Shown here: in pieces, positions 20,109 to 61,112 of the stretch
Layout of the letters: each line of letters starts with the position of its first letter
Numbering within the stretch: the first letter of the stretch is position 1
Source: Piromyces finnis finn
Lineage: Eukaryota > Fungi > Neocallimastigomycota
Direction: 5' to 3'
Assembly (NCBI GenBank): GCA_002104945.1
Contig: MCFH01000004.1
Span: 868,001-932,000 of the forward strand
Length of the DNA stretch: 64,000 nt
The notes under the pieces: generated by a model
Told to the model about the DNA's origin: nothing
Databases searched by the model: none
What the model saw: only the letters and a program-made list of their open reading frames with translations
Translations under genes and position numbers: made by a program

Positions 20109-22544
20109 ATGTACTCAATTGTTGGTAAAATCGGAAAAGGAAATATAAACCAATGTCAACTAAGAAATTCAATTGCTGTAAAAAAGTTAAACATTAGTGC
20201 TTTAAGAAGTATCACTTTACAAGGAAAAACCCTTCAACCAGTACGTCTAAATATTAGCAATATTAAACCTGTTCAATCATTTCCATTACAAAATTCAAAT
20301 TGGAATATTCAAAATAAATTAAATAATTTTTCAATTAATAATGAAATAAAACGTTTCTATTCACAAGCACCTGAACAGGATACAAAATACAAGAAAGGGG
20401 AAGCATTAAAAGAATTTGGTGTAGATTTAACCGAGTTAGCTTCTCAAGGAAAATTAGATCCTGTTATTGGAAGGGAAGAAGAAATTAGAAGAACTATTCA
20501 AGTATTAAGCAGAAGAACAAAGAATAACCCAGTATTAATTGGTGATGCTGGTGTTGGTAAAACAGCTATTGCTGAAGGTCTTGCCCAACGAATAATTAAT
20601 GGGGAAGTTCCGGAAAGCATTAAGGATAAAAAGGTTGTGTCCCTTGATCTTGGTTCTCTTATTGCTGGCGCTAAATATAGAGGTGAATTCGAAGAGAGAC
20701 TAAAGGGTGTTTTAAGAGATATAACAGAATCTGAAGGTGAATTAATTATGTTTATTGATGAATTACATTTAATCTTTGGTTTAGGAAAAACTGATGGTAG
20801 TATGGATGCAGCTAATTTACTTAAACCTGCTTTAGCACGTGGAAAATTACATTGTTGTGGTGCAACCACAGTCGAGGAATATAGAAAATACATTGAAAAA
20901 GATGCTGCTTTAGCAAGAAGATTCCAAGCTATTTTAGTTGAAGAACCAACTGTCAGTGATACTATTAGTATTTTAAGAGGTTTAAAGGAAAAATACGAAG
21001 TTCACCATGGTGTTCAAATTAGTGATTCTGCTCTAGTTGCTGCTGCTCAACTTTCTAATCGTTACATTGCCGATAGAAGATTACCAGATAAGGCTATTGA
21101 TTTAGTTGATGAAGCTTGTTCAAAGTTAAGATTGCAACAAGAAAGTAAGCCTGAACAAATTGAAAATAATGATAGACATATATTAAAGTTAAAGATTGAA
21201 TTGGAATCTTTAAAAAAAGATAATGATCCATCCTCGATTGAAAGAAAGGAAAAACTTGAAAAGGAGTTAAAAGAAACTGAAGAAGAATGTGCCAAAATGA
21301 CAGCAAAATGGAATGAAGAAAAGAAAAAAATTGATGAGATAAAAGAATTAAAACAAAAGTTAGAACAATATCGTAATGAATTAGATCTTTGCCAAAGAAA
21401 AGGTGATTTATCTAGAGCTTCAGAATTAAAATATGGTATCATTCCAAATATCGAAAAACAGATTCCAAAAGATGAAAAGAAAATTGAAAGTTTATCATCA
21501 GAAGAATCTTTTATTCATGAAAAAGTTACTGCTGATGATATTGCTAATGTTGTTTCAAAGAATACCGGTATTCCAGTTCAATCCATGCTAACAAGAGAAA
21601 AAGAAAAATTAATAAATATTGAAAACGAATTGTCAAAGAGAGTTGTTGGACAACCAGAAGCCATCAAGACCATATCTGATGCTATTAGACTTTCAAAGGC
21701 TGGACTTCAATCTTCTAAACGTCCAATTGCTTCTTTCATTTTCCTTGGTCCAACTGGTGTTGGTAAAACAGAACTTTGTAAAGCTTTGACAAACTTTTTA
21801 TTTGATAATGAAAACTTTGTTCGTATTGATATGAGTGAATATATGGAAAAATTTTCTGTTTCTAGATTAATTGGTGCCCCACCAGGTTATATTGGTTATG
21901 AAGAAGGGGGTGAATTAACTGAAGCTGTCAGAAGACATCCATACACTGTTATTCTCCTCGATGAAATTGAAAAAGCTCATCGTGATGTCGCTAATATTTT
22001 ATTACAAATGCTAGATGAAGGTCATTTAACAGATTCCAAGGGTAGAGTTGTTGATTTCCGTAATACTATTATTATTGCTACCTCTAATTTAGGTGCAGAA
22101 ATGCTTGTTAAATCAGAAAGTGTTGCTGATGCTAAAGGACCTATTATGGATCTTCTTAGAAAACATTTTTCACCAGAACTTGTTAACAGATTTGATGATA
22201 TTATTTTATTTGATCGTTTAAATAAGGACGCAATAAGAGGTATTGTTGATGTTAGATTAAAGGAAATTCAAGATATGTTAAAGGAAAAGAAGATTACTCT
22301 TAATGTTGATAATGAAGCTAAAGACTGGCTTGCAAAGGAAGGTTATAGTCCAGTTTATGGTGCAAGACCATTGAATCGTGTTATTTTAAAAAATATTCTA
22401 AAACCATTATCTATGAAACTTATTGAAGGAAAGATTATGAATAATGAAGAAGTATTTATTAGTATTGATAATCAACATATCCATATTAAGGATAATCATG
22501 AAATAAATAACGACAGTAATGAAAATAAACCAGAAAAAAAGTAA
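20109..22544 (+). CDS. HSP78: Organellar (mitochondrial/hydrogenosomal) ClpB-type disaggregase Hsp78, intronless
   Basis: Two AAA+ modules ([14 protein letters not shown]; [17 protein letters not shown]) with a middle coiled coil and no ClpB N-domain. A basic/hydroxylated N-terminal leader ends KRFY|S. Confidence 0.93.
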
Positions 22545-22824
22545 TAAGTAGGATAAAAAAAAATTTAAATAATTATTTATCTAAATACTATTGCTGTATA
22601 AACTTATATCAAATATTTCTTAATATTTTTATTTATAATATTACGATTTTCTTTTTTTTTTTTTTAATTTTGTTGTATAAAGCAATTAATAAAAGTATTT
22701 GCTTTATATACCAAAAAAATAATAAATATATTTATAAGATATTATACCATTTTTTATCTATCATCATATTTAACCTTTTTTTTCTTTTTGTAGAATAATA
22801 ATTTTGTAAAAATAAAATAAAATA

Positions 22825-23091
<267 letters not shown>

Positions 23092-23274
23092 GATAAAAAA
23101 AGTAAATAAAATATTAAAAAATAAAATATTTTTAAAGGTCTATTTATTGTGTACAATAATATAAGTATCAATTTATATAATTTTATTATAATTCGATTTT
23201 GATATATATATAAATTATAATAACTCTATATTTTTTCATTTATAATTTTTTTTTTCTACATCTTAGTTAAATAA

Positions 23275-23520
23275 CCCTCTTGGGAACGTGCCTTCATTTA
23301 TTTAATAAATGTAGTTTCTCAAGGGGGTCTACTCATGCTCATGGTACTGAGAGAGTAGAAAGAATTAAATCCAAGTATTGCGCAATGGATGCTTGGTGCC
23401 CTCTTAGGAATGTGCCTTCATTTATTTAATAAATGTAGTTTCTCAAGGGGGTCTACTCATGCTCATGGTACTGAGAGAGTAGAAAGAATTAAATCCAAGC
23501 ATTGCGCAATGGATGCTTGG
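23275..23520 (+). repeat. Two tandem 124-bp monomers at the LINE 5' end, plus a partial third hairpin to 23567
   Basis: ccctcttggg at 23275 recurs as ccctcttagg at 23399. The core ctcatggtactgag occurs three times. Confidence 0.95.
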
Positions 23521-24169
23521 TTAGTCTTCAAGGGAAAATTATTAGGACTAAGCTCATGGTACTGAGCGATTAAAAAACATTTTATTCATCGAATTTAAGT
23601 ATTTGATGAATAAGTTGAATGTTTGATATTCAGGTAAGTTTGTATAGTATTTAATTAGAAGAGTAATACATTTTGTTGCTGTATTTTTTCTTTTATTCAT
23701 GTATTCTTGTAGTACTACTCTTCTCTTGTAAGAATCCAATGTAGTCAACTTTAGCATTTGCATTGTTCTTTTATATTCATGTAGCTATTGTTGTATTGTT
23801 TCTTGTAAGAGACTGATTCACTCTACATCATGTAAAAATACTATTCACAAGCTTTCTGGTGTCGACATTCTTGATTCAAATTTTTTACCAATTTAAATAT
23901 TTAATGAAAAGTAAAGTCAAACAAGTTTAGTGTCAAAAAGCGAATCGAATTTACTAACAACAAACCAAAACTAGAATTTTTAAAAAGAGTTAACAACTAG
24001 AATTCAAAAAAAGAAACTTTAAACTTTAAACAAAGTATCGTAACAATTTTTGTACTATCCAGTACTTTTAAGAAGAGAGAGAGAGACAGATTTTTTCCAT
24101 ATACGTTATATTTATAATTTTTATTAGTATTTATTTTATATTCAATTTTTTTAATTAGAATTAATTATC

Positions 24170-27100
24170 ATGTCAGTCCTTTATATTAAAGATAAGAATT
24201 ATATCAGACGTGGTACCCGGTCTTATGGTATCCCCTTAGATGATATTCGCTCCTTCTTTATCCGTGGTATTCGATCATGGTCAGTAAATATGCTATGGGA
24301 AAAACTCGAGGTTATTCTAGAAGATAAATTTAATTCAGTTATTAGTGTTAAATATTTTCAGACTTTCAATGATCACTTTTTCTTAGTCAAGGTTCATGGT
24401 TCATCGAAAGATTGTATTAAAATCTTACACATGTTAAAGAAGAAACTTTCAGTTACCTCAATTTCCTTTTCAGCTCGTAGTAGAAGGAATCACAAATACA
24501 CTTTTTCCACTCTCAAACGTAAAATTTTAGTTTCTAATAAACATCAACATTCTATTCAACAATCATTTCAACAATCAGTTCAACAATCTCATCAACAATC
24601 CGATCTTCAACTAGATCTTCAACAAGATCTTCAACAAGTTTCCAATCATGAAAATATTCCAGATCTACAGCAAACACAATTTCATTCTCAACATTCAACA
24701 ATTAATTCTAATAGCTCTATCAACTCTGATAACAGTTCAATAGTTGATAGTTCTTCAGTTTCACAGCCATCTAGTAATAGTTCTACTTATTCCTCTGATG
24801 CATCATCCATTAATAACGATGACTTTAATAATAATAATAATAGCAACGATTCTTCCTCATCCAACAAGCCTGATAACTTTTCTTTTTGTCTTAGTTGGAA
24901 CACCAATGGGTGGAATCACGAAAAGAGAGATAGTATTAGCTATTTCACAGCTATTTTCAAACCATTATTTTTATGTTTCCAAGAAACTGGTAATGGTTCT
25001 GGATCGAATACAGATTATCCTTGTCGTGTTACTTTGCGAAACTATAGACACTTTTTCAAGAAAGCTGACGAATCAGTTCCGGGAATGAGAGGTTTATATT
25101 TAGGTTTTCACAATTCATGTCAAGCCTCACTTGAAAACTTCTCTGGAAAGTATATTATTTCTATTTATACTTTTAGTCTCTGGAATAGATTCAAATGCTC
25201 GATTGGTAATGTTTATATGCCTCATAGTCATCACAACATCTATGTTGATCATGCAAAGTTAGAAGTTCGCTTGTGGTTACAAACTCATTCATCCCATCCA
25301 TCGATTCTTGTTGGTGATTTTAATATGTCTAAAGTAAAATTATCCAACTGGTTATCAACTAATGGATTAGGAGATTGGGAAATTCTTCCGCTTAGAGGGT
25401 CTACTATCTCTTGGACTCGAGGTGATCAATCTTCCGACATTGACCATGCTCTTATCAATTCGAAGATGAAAGATCTTATTCACTCAGGATCATTTATAAA
25501 TAATTTTTATCCTGTATCAGACCATAAGCCACTTCTTATTAATGGTAAAATTATTCCTATGGAAGATTTTTCTAATGACTTTAATGTTCCTAAGAAAATT
25601 CTGAAATGGAATAGATTAAAATGTATTGAGGAAAAGGAATCTATTCTCAGTCATAATAAATTCCAAATACTTTCAGCAAAATCCAACGATCCTAATGTTT
25701 CTACAGATGAACTTTCCAAAGAGTTTACTTCAACTGCTTTCTCAATTGCAGACGAGCTCAGTATTACTTCAGCAAATAATGTTATAAAGTCTTCATTTCA
25801 TATTTCACAACAAATTTTTAATCTTCAAAAAATCAAAATGAAGTTGTATAAGAGATTTAAAAAAGAAAGAATTTATGATATAGATGAATTTATTAAAAGA
25901 ATTAAAATCTACCGTAAACTCATTGATTACATCCACAAAAGATGTAATGAATTTAGGAAGCAAGAATATCTTCATTGGATTAAAACAGGATGTGAGTATA
26001 TGAAGAGTCATAATCCTAAGAAGGCCTGGAAATGGATCAAGAAAACTGCAAAAATTGGAAAAGATTCTTTCTTTATTGCTCAACCAATTAAAAATAAAAA
26101 TGGAGAATTAGTTGTTGCTACGGAAGAACAACTAGAAGTGTGGCATGATCATTTCGAAAAGCTTGCATCAGACCCAAGTGGTGTAAGTCTTGATTTGGAG
26201 CATTGGTATGAAGAACCAATGAATAAACGTTTTTCACTTCCTATGCTTGATGAGTGGGATATCAACCAAGATATTAGTATTGATGAAGTCAAGTCAGCTA
26301 TCCTCACTACTCCAAATTATAAAGCATCAGGTCCGGATGGTATTCCAATTGAATTTTACAAAGCATTAATTCCATCAAGTAATGATTCTAATAATGCTAC
26401 AGATAATAATTCTTCTGGTAATACTACTTCAGATAATGATGCTCATGGTTTAAATTTTATTCTTAAATTATTCAACCGTATTTGGGATGGAGATTTCCCC
26501 AACTCATGGAATGAATCCAGTATTGTTTCTATTCCTAAGAAGGGAGATTTGACAGATTGTGATAACTATCGAGGTATATCACTTATCAATAATGGTATTA
26601 AGTTGATTTCCAAAATTGTCACCACTAGAATCTCAGAATATGGTCTAAAGAATAATTTCATTAGACCTGAACAATTTGGTTTTCGAAAAAAGGAAGAAAG
26701 TATTAGTCTTTTCATTTCAATCCAAGAAATATGCCGTAGACGTCAATTAGATAATAAAGAGACATATTTGGCCTTTTTAGATCTCAGGAAAGCATACGAT
26801 TCAGTCCCAATCGGTAATATTCTCCATAAATTAGATTGTTTAGGAATCCGAGGTAAGAGTCTACAATTTATCAAAAATTTATATTTAACATCTAAGGCTA
26901 ATGTCAAATTAGATGGACAATTCTCGAAATCTTTTGATGTGAAGAAAGGAGTCCGTCAAGGATGCCCTCTTTCTCCTATTCTCTTTAATCTCTTTATTAA
27001 TGATATATTTAGAGAGTGCGAAGATCTCGGAGTCAGTTTAGGTGACACTCGATGCTGTGGTGGACTTTTTGCAGATGATATAGTTATTTGTGCTCCAACA

Positions 27101-28693
27101 AGAGGATGCTTAAAAAAGATGCTTAGAAGAGTTAATGAATGGGCACTGTATAATGAAATGGAATTTGGTATCCAGAAATGTTCAACGATGGTGATTCGTC
27201 CTGAATCAATAGAAAATCAGAACAAGAGAGATCCAACATTTTACTTAGCAGGACAACCCATTCCAACTACTGATTGCTATACTTATCTTGGTGTTCCATT
27301 TGATAAGAATCTGTCCCTTAAACCAGTAATTAAAGCTCTTAATAACAAGGTTTTGAAAGGACTTTTCTCAGTCAGTAAATTCTTAAGAAATCCTAATATT
27401 CCTATTCCTTTCAAAAAACTAGTACTTAACTCACAAGTAATCAGCAGAGTTTCATACTTTGCACCATTACTTGGATCCAACAAAGCTAGGTCTAGAATTG
27501 CTCAGAAGCATGTTAACAAAGGAATACGATGGGTTGCCGGAGTTCATAAAGCTGTATCGTTTATATCTTTATACTCTATCTCAAAAGATTTGAATATTCC
27601 TCCATTGTCAGCCAAATGTGCGTTAGCTCAGGTTAGATGTTTTAACAAATGGAAAAACTCAAATTGTATTATCTCACACCTTGTCAATTACATTCCTAAA
27701 TTTAGAAAATACACGTGGTGCAAATCAAGTAGGACACTTGATAAAAAACTAAAGAAACATGGAGATGTTAAAGCAGTTAAAAACTTTTATTGGAAAGATC
27801 TCAAAGGGAATTCAATCAAAGCGCAATATTATGATGATAATAAATTTATTGAAACTAAAGATTTTATTAAATTATGTTATGAGTACCCAGAGTTTGCCTA
27901 TGGCTTCTACTGGCTATTGAAAGCAAGAAGCGGATACAAGTTGGATGCTAGAGTTGCCAAAGCTGCCAAATTTGTTGATCCAGTTTGTCCTAACTACTGT
28001 CCATGTTGCAAGTGTGGTGTTCAAAGTATTAAACATTGGTTATTAGATTGTCCAACATTTAGAGATATCCGTATTAAACATTATGATTCCATAGTTCAGC
28101 TATTAAATTTTTTCAGTCAACGTAATTCCAATAGTCCTATCAATAATAATGAAATTGATAATATCAGTAGAGATAGTAATAACATTAATAGTAATAGTAA
28201 CAATAGTAGTAATAACAATAGTAATAGTAACAATAGTAATAGTAACAATAGTAATAATAACAATAATAGAAATAATAATATTAGTAATGATAGCAATAGT
28301 GAAGATAATAATTCTAATTTAGATAGTAATTTAGTTAATGATAGTAATAGTTCTAATAATCCGGTGAATATTAATGTGTATGATTATTCTAGTGTGTACA
28401 GTAAAATATTTAAATTCCTTCTTGGGGGAAGAAGTTTTAACAATATTAATTACAATTCAAGGGAATGGAAAGAACTTTGTAAGCGTCAGATTCAATCTGA
28501 TACTAACGAAGGAACACCATTCTTGACGGTAACCGCGGAACTTCTAACCAAAATCATGCCTTTTGCTATTGGCCAGCAATGGTCAATGTTCAAAAGGTTT
28601 GAAGCAACATCCAAGAGCGTCAATGCTGAAGAAACAGTAAGACAGGCCAGGAGGGCCAGCGCAACCAATGGAGATCATAATTTTGTTCCATGA
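24170..28693 (+). CDS. LINE polyprotein, 1507 aa: N-terminal extension, APE endonuclease, reverse transcriptase, CCHC-like knuckle
   Basis: APE motifs SWNTNG, FQET, VGDFN, IDH and SDH. RT motifs GPDGIP, YRGISL, FLDLRKAYDSV, GVRQGCPLSP and FADD. Knuckle CPCCKCG.....HWLLDC. Confidence 0.97.
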   Translation: MSVLYIKDKNYIRRGTRSYGIPLDDIRSFFIRGIRSWSVNMLWEKLEVILEDKFNSVISVKYFQTFNDHFFLVKVHGSSKDCIKILHMLKKKLSVTSISFSARSRRNHKYTFSTLKRKILVSNKHQHSIQQSFQQSVQQSHQQSDLQLDLQQDLQQVSNHENIPDLQQTQFHSQHSTINSNSSINSDNSSIVDSSSVSQPSSNSSTYSSDASSINNDDFNNNNNSNDSSSSNKPDNFSFCLSWNTNGWNHEKRDSISYFTAIFKPLFLCFQETGNGSGSNTDYPCRVTLRNYRHFFKKADESVPGMRGLYLGFHNSCQASLENFSGKYIISIYTFSLWNRFKCSIGNVYMPHSHHNIYVDHAKLEVRLWLQTHSSHPSILVGDFNMSKVKLSNWLSTNGLGDWEILPLRGSTISWTRGDQSSDIDHALINSKMKDLIHSGSFINNFYPVSDHKPLLINGKIIPMEDFSNDFNVPKKILKWNRLKCIEEKESILSHNKFQILSAKSNDPNVSTDELSKEFTSTAFSIADELSITSANNVIKSSFHISQQIFNLQKIKMKLYKRFKKERIYDIDEFIKRIKIYRKLIDYIHKRCNEFRKQEYLHWIKTGCEYMKSHNPKKAWKWIKKTAKIGKDSFFIAQPIKNKNGELVVATEEQLEVWHDHFEKLASDPSGVSLDLEHWYEEPMNKRFSLPMLDEWDINQDISIDEVKSAILTTPNYKASGPDGIPIEFYKALIPSSNDSNNATDNNSSGNTTSDNDAHGLNFILKLFNRIWDGDFPNSWNESSIVSIPKKGDLTDCDNYRGISLINNGIKLISKIVTTRISEYGLKNNFIRPEQFGFRKKEESISLFISIQEICRRRQLDNKETYLAFLDLRKAYDSVPIGNILHKLDCLGIRGKSLQFIKNLYLTSKANVKLDGQFSKSFDVKKGVRQGCPLSPILFNLFINDIFRECEDLGVSLGDTRCCGGLFADDIVICAPTRGCLKKMLRRVNEWALYNEMEFGIQKCSTMVIRPESIENQNKRDPTFYLAGQPIPTTDCYTYLGVPFDKNLSLKPVIKALNNKVLKGLFSVSKFLRNPNIPIPFKKLVLNSQVISRVSYFAPLLGSNKARSRIAQKHVNKGIRWVAGVHKAVSFISLYSISKDLNIPPLSAKCALAQVRCFNKWKNSNCIISHLVNYIPKFRKYTWCKSSRTLDKKLKKHGDVKAVKNFYWKDLKGNSIKAQYYDDNKFIETKDFIKLCYEYPEFAYGFYWLLKARSGYKLDARVAKAAKFVDPVCPNYCPCCKCGVQSIKHWLLDCPTFRDIRIKHYDSIVQLLNFFSQRNSNSPINNNEIDNISRDSNNINSNSNNSSNNNSNSNNSNSNNSNNNNNRNNNISNDSNSEDNNSNLDSNLVNDSNSSNNPVNINVYDYSSVYSKIFKFLLGGRSFNNINYNSREWKELCKRQIQSDTNEGTPFLTVTAELLTKIMPFAIGQQWSMFKRFEATSKSVNAEETVRQARRASATNGDHNFVP

Positions 28694-28928
28694 TAAAATT
28701 TTGATCTTTGGCTCGGTGTCCCATTGGAAGTCAAATACAATTATTATACTTTAGTATGATAGTGGCTTTCTTACTTTAATTAAAATTACTAGAATACATT
28801 ATACCCAATTTTTATTCATTTGTGTTTATTTAAACATATTTTTTTTATTTTTATTTATTTTTAATTTTTTATTACATGTATTATAATTTTAATTAAATTA
28901 ATAATAAAGTGTAAAAATATTTGATGCC

Positions 28929-28972
<44 letters not shown>

Positions 28973-29174
28973 GTTAAATAAAAATATAACTTGTGTTGAA
29001 TAAATTTAAAGCATATATATATAAATTCTATATTGTTATTATTATAATTTTTTTTTTTTTTTTTTTTTTTTTTTTGAATGTTAAAATAAATAATGTAAAT
29101 AATAAAAAAAAAGAAAAAATAGGATAAAAAAAAAAAAAGAAATATTAAAAAAAAAGGGTAATATTTAAAAAGAT

Positions 29175-55397: not shown

Positions 55398-55437
<40 letters not shown>

Positions 55438-55725
55438 GGCATCAAATATTTTAAACTTTATTATTAATTTAATTAAAATTATAATACATGTAATAAAAAA
55501 TAAAAATAAAAATAAAAATAAAAAAAATATGTTTAAATAAACACAAATGAATAAAATTTGGGTATAATGTATTCTAGTAATTTTAATTAAAGTAAGAAAG
55601 CCACTATCATACTAAAGTATAATAATTGTATTTGACTTCCAATGGGACACCGAGCCAAAGATCAAAATTTTGTCATGGAACAAAATTATGATCTCCATTG
55701 GTTGCGCTGGCCCTCCTGGCCTGTC

Positions 55726-58700
55726 TTACTGTTTCTTCAGCATTGTTTCTTCAGCATTGACGCTCTTGGATGTTGCTTCAAACCTTTTGAACATTGACCA
55801 TTGCTGGCCAATAGCAAAAGGCATGATTTTGGTTAGAAGTTCCGCGGTTACCGTCAAGAATGGTGTTCCTTCGTTAGTACCAGATTGAATCTGACGCTTA
55901 CAAAGTTCTTTCCATTCCCTTGAATTGTAATTAATATTGTTAAAACTTCTTCCCCCAAGAAGGAATTTAAATATTTTACTGCACACACTAGAATAATCAT
56001 ACACATTAATATTCACCGGATTATTAGAACTATTACTATCATTAACTAAATTACTATCTAAATTAGAATTATTATCTTCACTATTGCTATCATTACTAAT
56101 ATTATTATTTCTATTATTGTTATTATTACTATTGTTACTATTACTATTGTTACTATTACTATTGTTATTACTACTATTGTTACTATTAGTATTAATGTTA
56201 TTACTATCTCTACTGATATTATCAATTTCATTATTATTGATAGGACTATTGGAATTACGTTGACTGAAAAAATTTAATAGCTGGACTATAGAATCATAAT
56301 GTTTAATACGGATATCTCTAAATGTTGGACAATCTAATAACCAATGTTTAATACTTTGATCTCCACACTTGCAACATGGACAGTAGTTAGGACAAACTGG
56401 ATCAACAAATTTGGCAGCTTTGGCAACTCTAGCATCCAACTTGTATCCGCTTCTTGCTTTCAATAGCCAGTAGAAGCCATAGGCAAACTCTGGGTACTCA
56501 TAACATAATTTAATAAAATCTTTAGTTTCAATAAATTTATTATCATCATAATATTGCGCTTTGATTGAATTCCCTTTGAGATCTTTCCAATAAAAGTTTT
56601 TAACTGCTTTAACATCTCCATGTTTCTTTAATTTTTTATCAAGTGTCCTACTTGATTTGCACCACGTGTATTTTCTAAATTTAGGAATGTAATTGACAAG
56701 GTGTGAGATAATACAATTTGAGTTTTTCCATTTGTTAAAACATCTAACCTGAGCTAACGCACATTTGGCTGACAATGGAGGAATATTCAAATCTTTTGAA
56801 ATAGAGTATAAAGATATAAACGATACAGCTTTATGAACTCCGGCAACCCATCGTATTCCTTTGTTAACATGCTTCTGAGCAATCCTAGACCTAGCTTTGT
56901 TGGATCCAAGTAATGGTGCAAAGTATGAAACTCTGCTAATCACTTGTGAGTTAAGTACTAGTTTTTTGAAAGGAATAGGAATATTAGGATTTCTTAAGAA
57001 TTTACTGACTGAGAAAAGCCCTTTCAAAACCTTGTTATTAAGAGCTTTAATTACTGGTTTAAGGGACAGATTCTTATCAAATGGAACACCAAGATAAGTA
57101 TAACAATCAGTAGTTGGAATGGGTTGTCCTGCTAAGTAAAATGTTGGATCTCTCTTGTTCTGATTTTCTATTGATTCAGGACGAATCACCATCGTTGAAC
57201 ATTTCTGGATACCAAATTCCATTTCATTATACAATGCCCATTCATTAACTCTTCTAAGCATCTTTTTTAAGCATCCTCTTGTTGGAGCACAAATAACTAT
57301 ATCATCTGCAAAAAGTCCACCACAGCATCGAGTGTCACCTAAACTGACTCCTAGATCTTCGCACTCTCTAAATATATCATTAATAAAGAGATTAAAGAGA
57401 ATAGGAGAAAGAGGGCAACCTTGACGGACTCCTTTCTTCACATCAAAAGATTTCGAGAATTGTCCATCTAATTTGACATTAGCCTTAGATGTTAAATATA
57501 AATTTTTGATAAATTGTAAACTCTTACCTCGGATTCCTAAACAATCTAATTTATGGAGAATATTACCGATTGGGACTGAATCGTATGCTTTCCTGAGATC
57601 TAAAAAGGCCAAATATGTCTCTTTATTATCTAATTGACGTCTACGGCATATTTCTTGGATTGAAATGAAAAGACTAATACTTTCTTCCTTTTTTCGAAAA
57701 CCAAATTGTTCAGGTCTAATGAAATTATTCTTTAAACCATATTCTGAGATTCTAGTGGTGACAATTTTGGAAATCAACTTAATGCCATTATTGATAAGTG
57801 ATATACCTCGATAGTTATCACAATCTGTCAAATCACCCTTCTTAGGAATAGAAACAATACTGGATTCATTCCATGAGTTGGGGAAATCTCCATCCCAAAT
57901 ACGGTTGAATAATTTAAGAATAAAATTTAAACCATGAGCATCATTATCTGAAGTAGTATTACCAGAAGAATTATTATCTGTAGCATTATTAGAATCATTA
58001 CTTGATGGAACTAATGCTTTGTAAAATTCAATTGGAATACCATCCGGACCTGATGCTTTATAATTTGGAGTAGTGAGGATAGCTGACTTGACTTCATCAA
58101 TACTAATATCTTGGTTGATATCCCACTCATCAAGCATAGGAAGTGAAAAACGTTTATTCGTTGGTTCTTCATACCAATGCTCCAAATCAAGACTTACACC
58201 ACTTGGGTCTGATGCAAGATTTTCGAAATGATCATGCCACACATCTAGTTGTTCTTCCGTAGCAACAACTAATTCTCCATTTTTATTTTTAATTGGTTGA
58301 GCAATAAAGAAAGAATCTTTTCCAATTTTTGCAGTTTTCTTGATCCATTTCCAGGCCTTCTTAGGATTATGACTCTTCATATACTCACATCCTGTTTTAA
58401 TCCAATGAAGATATTCTTGCTTCCTAAATTCATTACATCTTTTGTGGATGTAATCAATGAGTTTACGGTAGATTTTAATTCTTTTAATAAATTCATCTAT
58501 ATCATAAATTCTTTCTTTTTTAAATCTCTTATACAACTTCATTTTGATTTTTTGAAGATTAAAAATTTGTTGTGAAATATGAAATGAAGACTTTATAACA
58601 TTATTTGCTGAGGTAATACTGAGCTCGTCTGCAATTGAAAAAGCAGTTGAAGTAAACTCTTTGGAAAGTTCATCTGTAGAAACATTAGGATCGCTGGATT

Positions 58701-60222
58701 TTGCTGAAAGTATTTGGAATTTATTATGACTGAGAATAGATTCCTTTTCCTCAATACATTTTAATCTATTCCATTTCAGAATTTTCTTAGGAACATTAAA
58801 GTCATTAGAAAAATCTTCCATAGGAATAATTTTACCATTAATAAGAAGTGGCTTATGGTCTGATACAGGATAAAAATTATTTATAAATGATCCTGAGTGA
58901 ACAAGATCTTTCATCTTCGAATTGATAAGAGCATGGTCAATGTCGGAAGATTGATCACCTCGAGTCCAAGAGATAGTAGACCCTCTAAGCGGAAGAATTT
59001 CCCAATCTCCTAATCCATTAGTTGATAACCAGTTGGATAATTTTACTTTAGACATATTAAAATCACCAACAAGAATCGATGGATGGGATGAATGAGTTTG
59101 TAACCACAAGCGAACTTCTAACTTTGCATGATCAACATAGATGTTGTGATGACTATGAGGCATATAAACATTTCCAATCGAGCATTTGAATCTATTCCAG
59201 AGACTAAAAGTATAAATAGAAATAATATACTTTCCAGAGAAGTTTTCAAGTGAGGCTTGACATGAATTGTGAAAACCTAAATATAAACCTCTCATTCCCG
59301 GAACTGATTCGTCAGCTTTCTTGAAAAAGTGTCTATAGTTTCGCAAAGTAACACGACAAGGATAATCTGTATTCGATCCAGAACCATTACCAGTTTCTTG
59401 GAAACATAAGAATAATGGTTTGAAAATAGCTGTGAAATAGCTAATACTATCTCTCTTTTCGTGATTCCACCCATTGGTGTTCCAACTAAGACAAAAAGAA
59501 AAGTTATCAGGCTTGTTGGATGAGGAAGAATCGTTGCTATTATTATTATTATTAAAGTCATCGTTATTAATGGATGATGCATCAGAGGAATAAGTAGAAC
59601 TATTACTAGATGGCTGTGAAACTGAAGAACTATCAACTATTGAACTGTTATCAGAGTTGATAGAGCTATTAGAATTAATTGTTGAATGTTGAGATTGAAA
59701 TTGTGTTTGCTGTAGATCTGGAATATTTTCATGATGGGAAACTTGTTGAAGATCCTGTTGAAGATCTTGTTGAAGATCGGATTGTTGATGAGATTGTTGA
59801 ACTGATTGTTGAACTGATTGTTGAAATGATTGTTGAATAGAATGTTGATGTTTATTAGAAACTAAAATTTTACGTTTGAGAGTGGAAAAAGTGTATTTGT
59901 GATTCCTTCTACTACGAGCTGAAAAGGAAATTGAGGTAACTGAAAGTTTCTTCTTTAACATGTGTAAGATTTTAATACAATCTTTTGATGAACCATGAAC
60001 CTTGACTAAGAAAAAGTGATCATTGAAAGTTTGAAAATATTTAACACTAATAACTGAATTAAATTTATCTTCTAGAATAACCTCGAGTTTTTCCCATAGC
60101 ATATTTACTGACCATGATCGAATACCACGGATAAAGAAGGAGCGAATATCATCTAAGGGGATACCATAAGACCGGGTACCACGTCTGATATAATTCTTGT
60201 CTTTAATATAAAGGACTGACAT
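55726..60222 (-). CDS. LINE polyprotein, 1498 aa (APE, RT, knuckle), intact apart from an altered C-terminus
   Basis: Same motifs as copy A. It has 4 extra residues in the QQS repeat, and the 14-nt duplication shortens the C-terminus to AEETMLKKQ*. Confidence 0.97.
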   Translation of the reverse strand: MSVLYIKDKNYIRRGTRSYGIPLDDIRSFFIRGIRSWSVNMLWEKLEVILEDKFNSVISVKYFQTFNDHFFLVKVHGSSKDCIKILHMLKKKLSVTSISFSARSRRNHKYTFSTLKRKILVSNKHQHSIQQSFQQSVQQSVQQSHQQSDLQQDLQQDLQQVSHHENIPDLQQTQFQSQHSTINSNSSINSDNSSIVDSSSVSQPSSNSSTYSSDASSINNDDFNNNNNSNDSSSSNKPDNFSFCLSWNTNGWNHEKRDSISYFTAIFKPLFLCFQETGNGSGSNTDYPCRVTLRNYRHFFKKADESVPGMRGLYLGFHNSCQASLENFSGKYIISIYTFSLWNRFKCSIGNVYMPHSHHNIYVDHAKLEVRLWLQTHSSHPSILVGDFNMSKVKLSNWLSTNGLGDWEILPLRGSTISWTRGDQSSDIDHALINSKMKDLVHSGSFINNFYPVSDHKPLLINGKIIPMEDFSNDFNVPKKILKWNRLKCIEEKESILSHNKFQILSAKSSDPNVSTDELSKEFTSTAFSIADELSITSANNVIKSSFHISQQIFNLQKIKMKLYKRFKKERIYDIDEFIKRIKIYRKLIDYIHKRCNEFRKQEYLHWIKTGCEYMKSHNPKKAWKWIKKTAKIGKDSFFIAQPIKNKNGELVVATEEQLDVWHDHFENLASDPSGVSLDLEHWYEEPTNKRFSLPMLDEWDINQDISIDEVKSAILTTPNYKASGPDGIPIEFYKALVPSSNDSNNATDNNSSGNTTSDNDAHGLNFILKLFNRIWDGDFPNSWNESSIVSIPKKGDLTDCDNYRGISLINNGIKLISKIVTTRISEYGLKNNFIRPEQFGFRKKEESISLFISIQEICRRRQLDNKETYLAFLDLRKAYDSVPIGNILHKLDCLGIRGKSLQFIKNLYLTSKANVKLDGQFSKSFDVKKGVRQGCPLSPILFNLFINDIFRECEDLGVSLGDTRCCGGLFADDIVICAPTRGCLKKMLRRVNEWALYNEMEFGIQKCSTMVIRPESIENQNKRDPTFYLAGQPIPTTDCYTYLGVPFDKNLSLKPVIKALNNKVLKGLFSVSKFLRNPNIPIPFKKLVLNSQVISRVSYFAPLLGSNKARSRIAQKHVNKGIRWVAGVHKAVSFISLYSISKDLNIPPLSAKCALAQVRCFNKWKNSNCIISHLVNYIPKFRKYTWCKSSRTLDKKLKKHGDVKAVKNFYWKDLKGNSIKAQYYDDNKFIETKDFIKLCYEYPEFAYGFYWLLKARSGYKLDARVAKAAKFVDPVCPNYCPCCKCGDQSIKHWLLDCPTFRDIRIKHYDSIVQLLNFFSQRNSNSPINNNEIDNISRDSNNINTNSNNSSNNNSNSNNSNSNNSNNNNNRNNNISNDSNSEDNNSNLDSNLVNDSNSSNNPVNINVYDYSSVCSKIFKFLLGGRSFNNINYNSREWKELCKRQIQSGTNEGTPFLTVTAELLTKIMPFAIGQQWSMFKRFEATSKSVNAEETMLKKQ

Positions 60223-60866
60223 GATAATAAATTCTAATTAAAAATATTGAATATAAAATAAATACTAATAAAAATTATAAATATAACGTATATGGAAAAA
60301 AAATCTGTCTCTCTCTCTCTTCTTAAAAGTACTGGATAGTACAAAAATTGTTACGATGCTTTGTTTAAAGTTTCTTTTTTTTGAATTCTAGTTGTAAATT
60401 TTCTTTAAAAATTCTAGTTTTGGTTTGTTGTTAGTAAATTCGAATCGCTTTTTGACACTAAACTTGTTTGACTTTACTTTTCATTAAATATTTAAATTGG
60501 TAAAAAATTTGAATCAAGAATGTCGACACCAGAAAGCTTGTGAATAGTATTTTTACATGATGTAGAGTGAATCAGTCTCTTACAAGAAACAATACAACAA
60601 TAGCTACATGAATATAAAAATACAATGCAAATGCTAAAGTTGACTACATTGGATTCTTACAAGAGAAGAGTAGTACTACATGAATACATGAATAAAAGAA
60701 AAAATACAGCAACAAAATGTATTACTCTTCTAATTAAATACTATACAAACTTACCTGAATATCAAACATTCAACTTATTCATCAAATACTTAATTCGATG
60801 AATAAAATGTTTTTTAATCGCTCAGTACCATGAGCTTAGTCCTAATAATTTTCCCTTAAAGACTAA

Positions 60867-61112
60867 CCAAGCATCCATTGCGCAATGCTTGGATTTAATT
60901 CTTTCTACTCTCTCAGTACCATGAGCATGAGTAGACTCCCTTGATAAACTACGTTTATTAAATAAATGAAGGCACGTTTCCAAGAGGGCACCAAGCATCC
61001 ATTGCGCGATACTTGGATTTAATTCTTTCTACTCTCTCAGTACCATGAGCATGAGTAGACCCCCTTGAGAAACTACATTTATTAAATAAATGAAGGCACG
61101 TTCCCAAGAGGG
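60867..61112 (-). repeat. Two tandem 124-bp 5' monomers of LINE copy B
   Basis: Reverse complement of 23275-23520 with a few substitutions. The element boundary is again at the first C of ccctcttggg. Confidence 0.95.

Follow-up and report, generated by a model that had tools for sequence, protein, structure and literature searches.

The window analysed here is a 64,000 nt stretch of the Piromyces finnis genome (contig MCFH01000004.1, positions 868,001 to 932,000), and it contains two intact, full-length copies of a LINE in opposite orientations, designated E1 and E2. They align at 98.25% identity over 5723 nt, from 23274/61113 to the poly(A), and each is bounded by target-site duplications (TSDs). 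Both insertions begin exactly at the same base, the first C of a 124 nt tandem monomer (CCCTCTTGGG), and the 5' end of each consists of two such monomers followed by a decayed third unit. The features of the locus, with strand, are as follows.

23261-23274 (+), 5' TSD of E1, TCTTAGTTAAATAA; the same 14 nt recur at 28968-28981, directly after the poly(A)
23275-28967 (+), full-length LINE copy E1, with the 5' head, a 5' UTR of about 900 nt, a single ORF at 24170-28693 (1507 aa, RVT_1; relatives carry an APE endonuclease domain), a 3' UTR, and poly(A) at 28932-28967
23275-23398 (+), monomer 1, the terminal head, with H1, pseudoknot strand, inner hairpin, H2 and H3
23275-23327 (+), H1 domain, with 5' strand 23275-23286, pseudoknot strand GUGCC 23288-23292, inner hairpin 23295-23311 and 3' strand 23316-23327
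23328-23359 (+), H2, with outer stem 23328-23334/23353-23359, inner stem 23338-23341/23348-23351 and the 6 nt loop UGGUAC at 23342-23347, positions 2-6 of which are predicted to pair with 23288-23292
23371-23396 (+), H3, stem CCAAGUAU/AUGCUUGG with a loop holding GCGCAAUG
23399-23522 (+), monomer 2, an internal copy with private changes G8A (breaking an H1 pair) and C13U; H2, the pseudoknot strands and H3 are intact
23523-23567 (+), decayed, 5'-truncated third unit, with a UUAGUCUU/AGGACUAA hairpin and an exact copy of the H2 apex, GCUCAUGGUACUGAGC, at 23552-23567
23582-23613 (+), 13 bp AU-rich hairpin closing the structured leader
55401-61112 (-), full-length LINE copy E2 (ORF 55726-60222, 1498 aa), with TSD ATAAAAAAAACTA at 61125-61113 and 55400-55388
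60989-61112 (-), E2 monomer 1, with one difference from E1 monomer 1 (U105C, turning a U.G pair into C-G)
60865-60988 (-), E2 monomer 2, with four private changes (G10A, U36C, C44A, G52A), all breaking pairs of the H1 domain

A tandem repeat search (TRF) placed the repeat at 23275-23521 (period 124, 2.0 copies, 97% matches). The start motif of the monomer occurs four times in the window, at 23275 and 23399 (+) and at 61112 and 60988 (-), where none is expected by chance. The minimum free energy (MFE) fold of one monomer gives H1 (nt 1-12/42-53), the inner hairpin, the two-part H2 with loop UGGUAC, and H3, at -43.4 kcal/mol (z = -4.70; 0 of 200 shuffles as stable), and the 346 nt leader gives z = -8.0. 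The pseudoknot strand GUGCC (23288-23292) is complementary to GGUAC (23343-23347) in the H2 loop, and H1 contains two G.U pairs, so it is specific to the sense strand. The monomer is 41% G+C, in a window that is mostly 12-30%. An earlier note on this sequence had described the common start of the two insertions, these helices and the possible pseudoknot, the third GCTCATGGTACTGAGC (23552-23567) and the 13 bp hairpin, and all of these observations were confirmed, as was its remark that covariation among the four units is weak, with some changes breaking pairs.

Comparison with related LINEs provided evidence that the earlier note did not have. Ten relative loci (designated by L numbers; 8 distinct module types), whose ORFs are 44-57% identical to that of the window, carry the same architecture at their 5' boundary, nearly always as a single copy. 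In independent MFE folds, each shows H1 starting at nt 1-2, followed by a two-part H2 with a 6 nt loop, with z values of -2.5 to -6.0 for 8 of 9, and the sense strand is more stable than the antisense in 8 of 9. The common core is C3-4, N3-6, GGGR, N1-2 and a 5 nt pseudoknot strand (J), then a variable insert, the H1 3' strand and, 0-5 nt later, H2, with positions 2-6 of its loop (L2) pairing with J. It was found in the window monomers and in L027, L052, L002/L003/L028, L029/L032, L043, L005/L008 and L038, but not in L013 or L049-L051. Lineages B and C (L050/L051 and L013) start with a C-run and a stable stem, but no H2-loop pseudoknot was found in them.

Core sequences are only 42-73% alike, yet the stems stay paired with different letters. 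The J:L2 pairing holds in one register throughout, with 40/40 standard pairs and 2-4 pair types in all five columns, as in GUGCC:GGUAC (window), ACACC:GGUGU (L052), CUAGG:CCUAG (L043) and CCGUA:UACGG (L029). None of 20,000 column shuffles reached this, and against shuffled J strands the per-lineage p values were 0.002-0.1. The sequences are related, so the shuffle counts overstate independence, and both the pseudoknot register and the helix-anchored alignment were chosen by hand. MAFFT alignments of all heads were not structurally coherent, and pair tables were therefore anchored on the MFE helices of each sequence. Two covariance models built from the short-loop heads recovered only those heads plus L027 (22.7 bits, E = 6e-4), and with default filters did not recover the window monomers, L052, L043 or L005. 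A fold-based descriptor scan found every known head but also gave 14 hits on reversed or complemented control sequence, and is not specific without the energy and position criteria.

The 5' boundaries of the relatives rest on flank divergence only (L029/L032, L002/L028 and L005/L008), as a search for TSDs in them failed because their contigs end before the 3' ends. The boundary is less sharp for L002 and L003, which share 6 of 7 nt upstream of the CCCC. In all lineages the first base is C, and it follows an arbitrary flank base. The unit is single-copy in L003, L005, L008, L029, L038, L043 and L052, while L051 and L050 show tandem or internal duplication of their heads. The H3 loop is invariant, with different stems, in L027, L052 and L002/L003/L028, and H3 is absent from the other lineages. 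Heads are also modular. L027:201-1100 matches L049:80-981 at 99%, but L027 carries an extra 151 nt head, and L002 and L003 share a head although their ORFs belong to different lineages.

Within the window, substitutions are unevenly placed. The two monomer 1 copies differ at a single pair-preserving site, whereas all six private changes of the monomer 2 copies lie in nt 1-53, the H1 domain, and five of them break pairs; the third unit has lost H1. The H2 apex is kept in all units, including the decayed third one, and so is the H3 loop.

An Rfam scan had been named beforehand as a check on the structure. Scans of 7 kb, of the 421 nt stretch 23240-23660 at E <= 10 and of 12 relative loci at E <= 5 gave no family match, with only chance-level miRNA and sRNA hairpin hits (E 2-8 in the 421 nt stretch). 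No HDV-like, twister, hatchet, hammerhead, pistol, twister-sister, hairpin, VS or xrRNA model was matched. A captured cellular RNA (a tRNA, snRNA, 5S or 7SL head, as in SINEs) was rejected for lack of an Rfam hit. No paper was found on a LINE 5' RNA in Neocallimastigomycota or Piromyces, nor any linking xrRNAs to retrotransposons.

The interpretation in the earlier note, a candidate new structured RNA or ribozyme, is partly supported. A structured RNA is strongly supported by the compensatory changes among diverged relatives; the fold is real and uncatalogued, but nothing yet shows that it cuts itself, and the ribozyme remains a hypothesis. The view that the tandem monomer is the functional unit needs correcting, as the conserved unit is the H1-pseudoknot-H2 core, and H3 and the tandem repetition are lineage-specific additions.

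Our preferred explanation, held tentatively, is that the monomer is a duplicated copy of a conserved, pseudoknot-braced 5'-terminal RNA domain (a 'head') carried by a whole group of APE-type LINEs of anaerobic gut fungi, which marks or protects the end of the LINE RNA. The analysis itself establishes the core, its position at the very start of the element in every lineage (H1 at nt 1-2), its specificity for the sense strand, and the gain, loss and exchange of heads between ORF lineages as modules at the 5' tip. The rest is inferred. The head would work only at the very tip of the RNA, locking the first nucleotides into a braced helix and so fixing and shielding the 5' end of the retrotransposition template. 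In this view the end is most likely set at the RNA level, a longer transcript being either trimmed 5'->3' until the fold stops the nuclease, or cut at the base of H1. Initiation at C after an arbitrary base is atypical for a polymerase, which fits this view. Older heads pushed inside by a new tip would lose H1 but keep the H2 apex and H3, which probably also serve in every unit as protein or transcription-factor sites, making the region a dual RNA/DNA element in the manner of L1Tc Pr77. However, H1 and H2 are joined by only 0-2 nt in most lineages, which makes a cis loop-loop contact sterically demanding, and the pairing could instead be intermolecular.

Other explanations were considered less likely. 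A monomeric internal Pol II promoter, as in the mouse L1 A/Tf/Gf monomers, with transcription starting at the first C, is the strongest of these but still doubtful. In this case the palindromes (GCTCA-N6-TGAGC and ATTGCGCAAT, a C/EBP-type bZIP site) would be transcription-factor sites, and the RNA fold would be secondary, serving RNP assembly, translation or stability. An abundant autonomous LINE needs a promoter, tandem 5' monomers are the classic promoter arrangement, and the intact ORFs of both copies suggest autonomous activity. The pyrimidine-rich start (CCCUCUU) resembles a TCT/TOP-type initiator, and the parts kept in all units are the H2 apex and the H3 loop (GCGCAATG, invariant across three lineages). 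On the other hand, stems and pseudoknot covary, which selection on DNA binding sites does not produce, G.U pairs make the fold sense-strand specific, most relatives have a single head rather than an array, and the start is a pyrimidine with a random base at -1. An RNA dimerisation or packaging signal, with J and the H2 loop, and the H3 loop UGCGCA, pairing between two LINE RNAs or neighbouring monomers in a kissing-loop contact like retroviral DIS elements, is very unlikely. Self-complementary tetramers (often GUAC or CUAG) do sit in most H2 loops, the short H1/H2 linker disfavours a cis contact, and the third unit keeps an H2 apex with no J partner of its own. However, the loops of L052 (GGUGU) and L029 (AUACGG) are not self-complementary, yet their J strands match them, so the conserved pairing is J:L2 and not loop:loop, and no LINE is known to need RNA dimers.

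A new class of self-cleaving ribozyme, cutting at the base of H1 and releasing the LINE RNA from read-through transcripts, as HDV-like ribozymes do for R2, RTE and L1Tc and twister variants do for Perere-3, is unlikely on present evidence. It would account for the position of H1, the C after arbitrary flank and the compact, pseudoknotted fold with low sequence but high structure conservation, and in known cases the TSD abuts the cleavage site (PMC8501958; PMC3185411). Both two-monomer copies carry different H1-breaking changes in monomer 2 and none elsewhere in it, which is what survivorship would give if an intact internal H1 caused loss of the upstream monomer. Against this, no known ribozyme class is matched, no unpaired junction nucleotides are conserved apart from GGGR, H1 length varies from 7 to 13 bp, and the persistence of monomer 2, of intact internal monomer boundaries and of stacked heads (L027) through retrotransposition argues against constitutive HDV-style cleavage. 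A broader possibility, which we also consider less likely than not, is that the head is a new class of RNA that sets its own 5' end, either as a self-cleaving ribozyme with a kissing-loop architecture unlike HDV, twister or hatchet, or as the first exonuclease-stopping (xrRNA-like) structure used by a cellular retrotransposon to define and protect an uncapped template RNA.

The HDV-like ribozymes of R2, RTE and L1Tc (PMC3774820, PMC3185411) are likewise pseudoknotted domains of about 70-130 nt at the extreme 5' end of a non-LTR retrotransposon, with structure conserved far more than sequence and a first helix (P1) starting at the first nucleotide of the element, a feature shared by H1. Threading onto the HDV topology, a nested double pseudoknot with a catalytic C in J4/2, by hand was rejected, since the partner of J lies inside the apical loop of H2 rather than 3' of a closed P4, there is no 3 bp P3 or P1.1, and +1 is C, not G; the heads of L003, L028 and L029 (type II) have an unstructured 15-17 nt H1 loop with no P3. 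The L1Tc Pr77 hallmark (promoter as DNA, ribozyme as RNA; PMC3383444, PMC4035085) is a short 5' sequence shared by related elements, and the head may similarly act both as DNA and as RNA, its H2 apex and H3 loop being kept in every repeat unit and H1 only at the tip, but there is no sequence or fold similarity. Twister T-variants of Perere-3 in Schistosoma (PMC8501958) also define a LINE 5' end by an RNA motif with loop-to-internal-loop pseudoknots and a TSD directly next to its first nucleotide. Threading onto this topology was rejected too, as the twister core nucleotides and the A at +1 are absent, and in Perere-3 the flank supplies the P1 5' strand whereas here H1 lies wholly inside the element.

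Mouse L1 monomers are tandem units of about 100-200 bp at the LINE 5' end, ending in a truncated older unit and variable in copy number, and tandem units are likewise present in both window elements. They are conserved as DNA sites, and are not known to carry covarying stems or to start the element at a helix base. In the xrRNAs of flaviviruses and plant viruses, a helix at the 5' edge is braced by a loop pseudoknot so that the 5' strand is enclosed, as proposed for the head, and the protected RNA begins at the structure. The first structure met from the 5' side would be the one that counts, which fits retention of internal monomers, but the three-way junction or 3'-tail pseudoknot of known classes is absent, and exonuclease resistance of the head is inferred by analogy alone.

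How LINEs without site specificity obtain a precise, heritable 5' end is solved only for a few clades, by internal promoters, HDV-like ribozymes and twister ribozymes. Here, a whole group of LINEs in Neocallimastigomycota shares an uncatalogued pseudoknotted head that is swapped and stacked as a module and appears to be constrained only when terminal. The comparative set supplies natural compensatory variants of J:L2, H1 and H2, a ready-made mutational design. If the head processes or shields the RNA, it adds a new fold to the short list of end-defining RNAs, and would be a compact part for stabilising uncapped RNAs. If it is only a promoter with an RNP site, it still explains how 5' monomer arrays arise, by repeated addition of a new tip and decay of the old one.

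Scans for further relatives found none among viral contigs and, among genome contigs, one fungal contaminant contig in a rumen MAG. Of other contigs examined for heads, that of P0003 had no flank, and the 20 kb contig of P0023 holds a 5'-truncated copy without a head.

Tandem Repeats Finder reports a repeat with a period of 124 nt, 2.0 copies and 97% matches at 23275-23521, and the first 37 nt of the unit occur four times in the window, where none is expected by chance. The motif GCTCATGGTACTGAG occurs six times, three per element. The two LINE copies, E1 on the plus strand and E2 on the minus strand, align at 98.25% over 5723 nt, from 23274/61113 to their poly(A) tails, and each holds one long intact ORF. 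Both ORFs have an RVT_1 domain, and relatives also carry the APE endonuclease domain PF03372. The features referred to below are as follows.

23275 and 23399 (+), first and second monomer starts of E1
61112 and 60988 (-), first and second monomer starts of E2
24170-28693 (+), ORF of E1, 1507 aa
60222-55726 (-), ORF of E2, 1498 aa
23261-23274 and 28968-28981, target-site duplication of E1, TCTTAGTTAAATAA
61125-61113 and 55400-55388, target-site duplication of E2, ATAAAAAAAACTA
23552-23567 (+), exact copy of the H2 apex in a 5'-truncated, diverged third unit
23582-23613 (+), 13-bp hairpin

The target-site duplications can be read directly from the sequence, so both independent insertions begin at exactly the first C of CCCTCTTGGG, which is also the monomer boundary. 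The third unit follows monomer 2 and keeps only a short hairpin and the H2 apex. Immediately upstream of the E1 insertion site lies an (AAAT)n microsatellite of about 78 units (22810-23125), and an intact gene for an 811-aa ClpB/Hsp104-type AAA+ chaperone (20109-22544; AAA_2, AAA_lid_9 and ClpB_D2-small domains), which appears to be an ordinary host gene, lies next to the LINE.

The minimum free energy (MFE) fold of one monomer contains three helical elements. H1 pairs nt 1-12 with nt 42-53 and encloses the strand GUGCC and a 7-bp inner hairpin, H2 consists of 7 bp, an internal loop, 4 bp and the loop UGGUAC, and H3 has 9 bp and a loop holding GCGCAAUG. The energy is -43.4 kcal/mol (z = -4.70), and none of 200 dinucleotide shuffles folds as well, while the whole 346-nt leader gives z = -8.0. 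GUGCC (23288-23292) is complementary to GGUAC (23343-23347). The observation made in the earlier note, that the 5' end of the LINE is a tandem 124-nt monomer able to form these hairpins and a possible pseudoknot, is confirmed in every detail. Its interpretation as a candidate new structured RNA or ribozyme is partly supported, in that the structured RNA is real, whereas the ribozyme is at present only a possibility and is somewhat disfavoured.

The ORF retrieved several hundred relatives from gut and rumen metagenomes, the closest of which are 44-63% identical. Contigs were obtained by exact protein, by an alignment of ORF N-termini against JGI metagenomes, and from one fungal contaminant contig in a rumen MAG; the loci on them are designated L002 to L052. 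Wherever enough upstream DNA was present, the region 800-1100 nt upstream of the ORF was inspected at the point where different copies stop being alike, and there sits a G+C-rich stretch beginning with C3-4. Folded one by one, these stretches give the same architecture, in which H1 starts at nt 1-2 and is followed, 0-5 nt later, by a two-part hairpin H2 with a 6-nt apical loop. The loci are L002, L003, L028, L029/L032, L043, L005, L008, L038, L027 and L052. One of these public contigs (L032:1-57) starts with a sequence resembling an Illumina adapter (…CTACACTACGCTCTTCCGATCT), 16 nt before the LINE head, which is an assembly artefact in the public record. The z-scores are -2.5 to -6.0 for eight of nine heads, and -1.65 for L043. 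The cores are only 42-73% identical in pairwise global alignment, and the ORFs behind them are 44-57% identical to that of the window. The H2 outer stems are all different but complementary (UCUACUC, AGAUCAUCU, AGAUGCU, GAAGCUU, GAUAACUUUC, UUAACUUUAC, ACAACUAC), and the inner pairs of H1 vary among C-G, U-A, A-U and G-C. The sense strand folds better than the antisense in 8 of 9 cases, because of G.U pairs. This is the signature of a structure selected in the sense RNA, not of DNA palindromes.

In every one of the eight distinct head types the 5' half reads C3-4, N3-6, GGGR, N1-2 and then a 5-nt strand, J, which pairs with positions 2-6 of the 6-nt H2 loop (L2).

Table. Pairing of the J strand with H2 loop positions 2-6 in each head (J : loop).
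window, GUGCC:GGUAC
L027, GUAUC:GGUAC
L052, ACACC:GGUGU
L003 and L028, CCGUA:UACGG
L002, CCGUA:UGCGG
L029, CCGUA(U):(A)UACGG
L043, CUAGG:CCUAG
L005, L008 and L038, GUACU:AGUAC

All 40 cells are standard pairs, and each of the five columns shows two to four pair types, with changes on both sides. Shuffling the 3' letters within columns gives 24.9 +/- 2.5 paired cells and never reaches 40 in 20,000 trials, and within each lineage, shuffling the J region gives p = 0.002-0.1. However, the register was chosen by us, although it is the same for all heads, the sequences share ancestry, and MAFFT and two covariance models could not align all lineages, so that the counts come from a helix-anchored table and not from a blind alignment. 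The cleanest single case is the comparison of L052 with the window, since both have the same overall head type and the same H3 loop, and two pseudoknot pairs are changed on both sides (G-C to A-U, U-A to C-G). The 5' C-run can also pair with the nearby GGGR (a CCCC-N3-5-GGGG mini-hairpin; window 23275-23284, L003:152-162, L005:181-193) instead of the distal G-run of H1, and this alternative, which is conserved in nearly all lineages, could act as a co-transcriptional folding switch.

H3, with its invariant loop GCGCAAUG on different stems, is present in the window, L027, L052 and L002/L003/L028, but is absent from L029, L043 and the L005 group, and the inner hairpin of H1 is optional. Tandem repetition is the exception, as most relatives have one head. 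Lineage B (L050, L051) and L049 start with CCCCGAUGA and a long terminal stem, and L013 starts with a C-run hairpin, but no H2-loop pseudoknot was found in any of these. The conserved unit is, then, H1 + J:L2 + H2, and not the 124-nt monomer. A different kind of tandem 5' leader is seen in the relative L045, where an array of 52-58-nt C-rich repeats (CCCTCAAGTGGTAAAGGG...ACCCCCAACCCCC) lies upstream of the ORF (L045:470-830).

The heads behave as modules at the tip of the element. L027 and L049, two copies of one family, are 99% identical over 900 nt of 5' UTR, yet L049 begins at CCCCGATGATGG (L049:79) after AT-rich flank, whereas L027 carries an extra 151 nt (L027:50-200), a window-type head with H3, in front of that very point. 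The L027 head is preceded by the end of the endonuclease coding region of another LINE, and that of L050 by a piece of its own family's ORF (nested insertions). L002, which belongs to the ORF lineage of the window, and L003, whose ORF is 45% identical to that of the window, share a nearly identical head and then diverge. L051 has a tandem head-plus-spacer repeat, and L050 an internal duplication. The array in the window fits the same picture, with an intact terminal unit, a slightly damaged second unit, and a decayed, truncated third unit. The two terminal monomers differ at one site, which turns a U.G pair into C-G, while the two internal ones (23399-23522 and 60865-60988) carry six private changes, four of them G-to-A or C-to-T. 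All six lie in nt 1-53 (the H1 domain), five break pairs, and none touches H2, the pseudoknot strands or H3. If changes fell uniformly along the 124 nt, six of six in the first 53 would have a probability of about 0.006, although the numbers are small. Either H1 is needed only at the tip or an intact internal H1 is selected against, but with two copies relaxed constraint, selection against an intact internal H1 and a deamination-type process acting on the repeat cannot be told apart.

Searches of Rfam 15 gave no match to any family in the 7-kb element region, in the 421-nt leader at E <= 10, or in 12 relative loci at E <= 5, the only hits being chance-level miRNA and sRNA hairpins. This excludes recognisable HDV-like, hammerhead, twister, twister-sister, pistol, hatchet and hairpin ribozymes, known xrRNAs, and captured cellular RNAs. 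By topology the head is not HDV-like, since the partner of J lies inside the loop of the next hairpin rather than 3' of a closed P4, and the short heads have no P3. It is not twister either, as +1 is C and there are no core nucleotides. No paper on LINE 5' RNAs of Neocallimastigomycota or Piromyces was found. The head is a new RNA fold in a known functional niche, the 5'-end modules of non-LTR retrotransposons.

What the comparison establishes is a conserved, sense-strand, pseudoknotted domain whose first helix starts at the first nucleotide of the element, the modular gain of heads at the tip, and a pattern of change in internal heads that fits relaxed or negative selection on H1. That the head acts only at the RNA tip, to fix and shield the 5' end of the template, is inferred, and three mechanisms fit, namely nuclease arrest, self-cleavage and a promoter-defined start. 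Definition or shielding of the end at the RNA level is our tentative preference. One way this might occur is by nuclease arrest, in which a 5'->3' exonuclease would trim upstream read-through sequence, or a decapped leader, and stop at the first braced helix. This would explain the exact coincidence of the end with the base of H1 and the C start after arbitrary flank, and it is the only model that directly predicts that internal heads and monomers are retained. In this view the J:L2 pairing closes a ring that contains the H1 3' strand, and the 5' strand is wound through that ring, as in xrRNAs, but this is speculative and no known xrRNA class matches.

The other RNA-level possibility, self-cleavage at the base of H1, has LINE precedents (PMC3185411, PMC3774820, PMC8501958), and the H1-specific damage in both second monomers is what survivorship would produce. 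However, intact stacked heads, the lack of conserved junction nucleotides and the variable length of H1 weigh against it, and we consider a ribozyme unlikely. Somewhat less doubtful, but still less favoured than RNA-level end definition as a whole, is that transcription starts at the first C from an internal promoter and that the fold serves RNP assembly, translation or cap-proximal stability. The H2 apex palindrome and the H3 loop (ATTGCGCAAT in the window, a C/EBP-type site) are kept in every unit, so they could be the DNA elements, and a dual DNA/RNA role, as in L1Tc Pr77 (PMC3383444), is quite possible. Dimerisation or some other role is unlikely. There is one physical difficulty, in that H1 and H2 are joined by 0-2 nt in most lineages, and a cis kiss therefore needs a sharp hinge at exactly the place where the 5' end lies; the pairing might instead be made between molecules or between neighbouring units.

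Just after the structured head, at 23631-23639, is a perfect 5' splice-site consensus, CAGGTAAGT (and ACAGGTAAGT at about position 500 of L003), within an intronless retroelement. It may be a U1 snRNP site, suppressing premature polyadenylation in AT-rich RNA, or a real 5'-UTR intron. A second conserved 5'-UTR hairpin lies about 530 nt into the element (23808-23824), with the stem AGAG/CUCU and the loop ACUGAUUCA. It has no Rfam match, but is also present in L005 (~520), L002 (~690), L028 (~530), L027 (~760), L050 (~425), L051 (~350), L008 (~1480) and L038 (~380), and relatives keep the loop NNUGAUUCA while the stem changes to GGAG/CUCC, UGAG/CUCA or GGA/UCC (covariation). The leader at 23641-23860 holds 10 UGUA motifs in 220 nt, against 1.7 expected (maximum of 7 in 2000 shuffles). 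They occur mostly as YAUGUAG or CUUGUA, the same motifs flank the conserved hairpin in all relatives, and they could represent a cluster of sites for a PUF-type or element-encoded RNA-binding protein.
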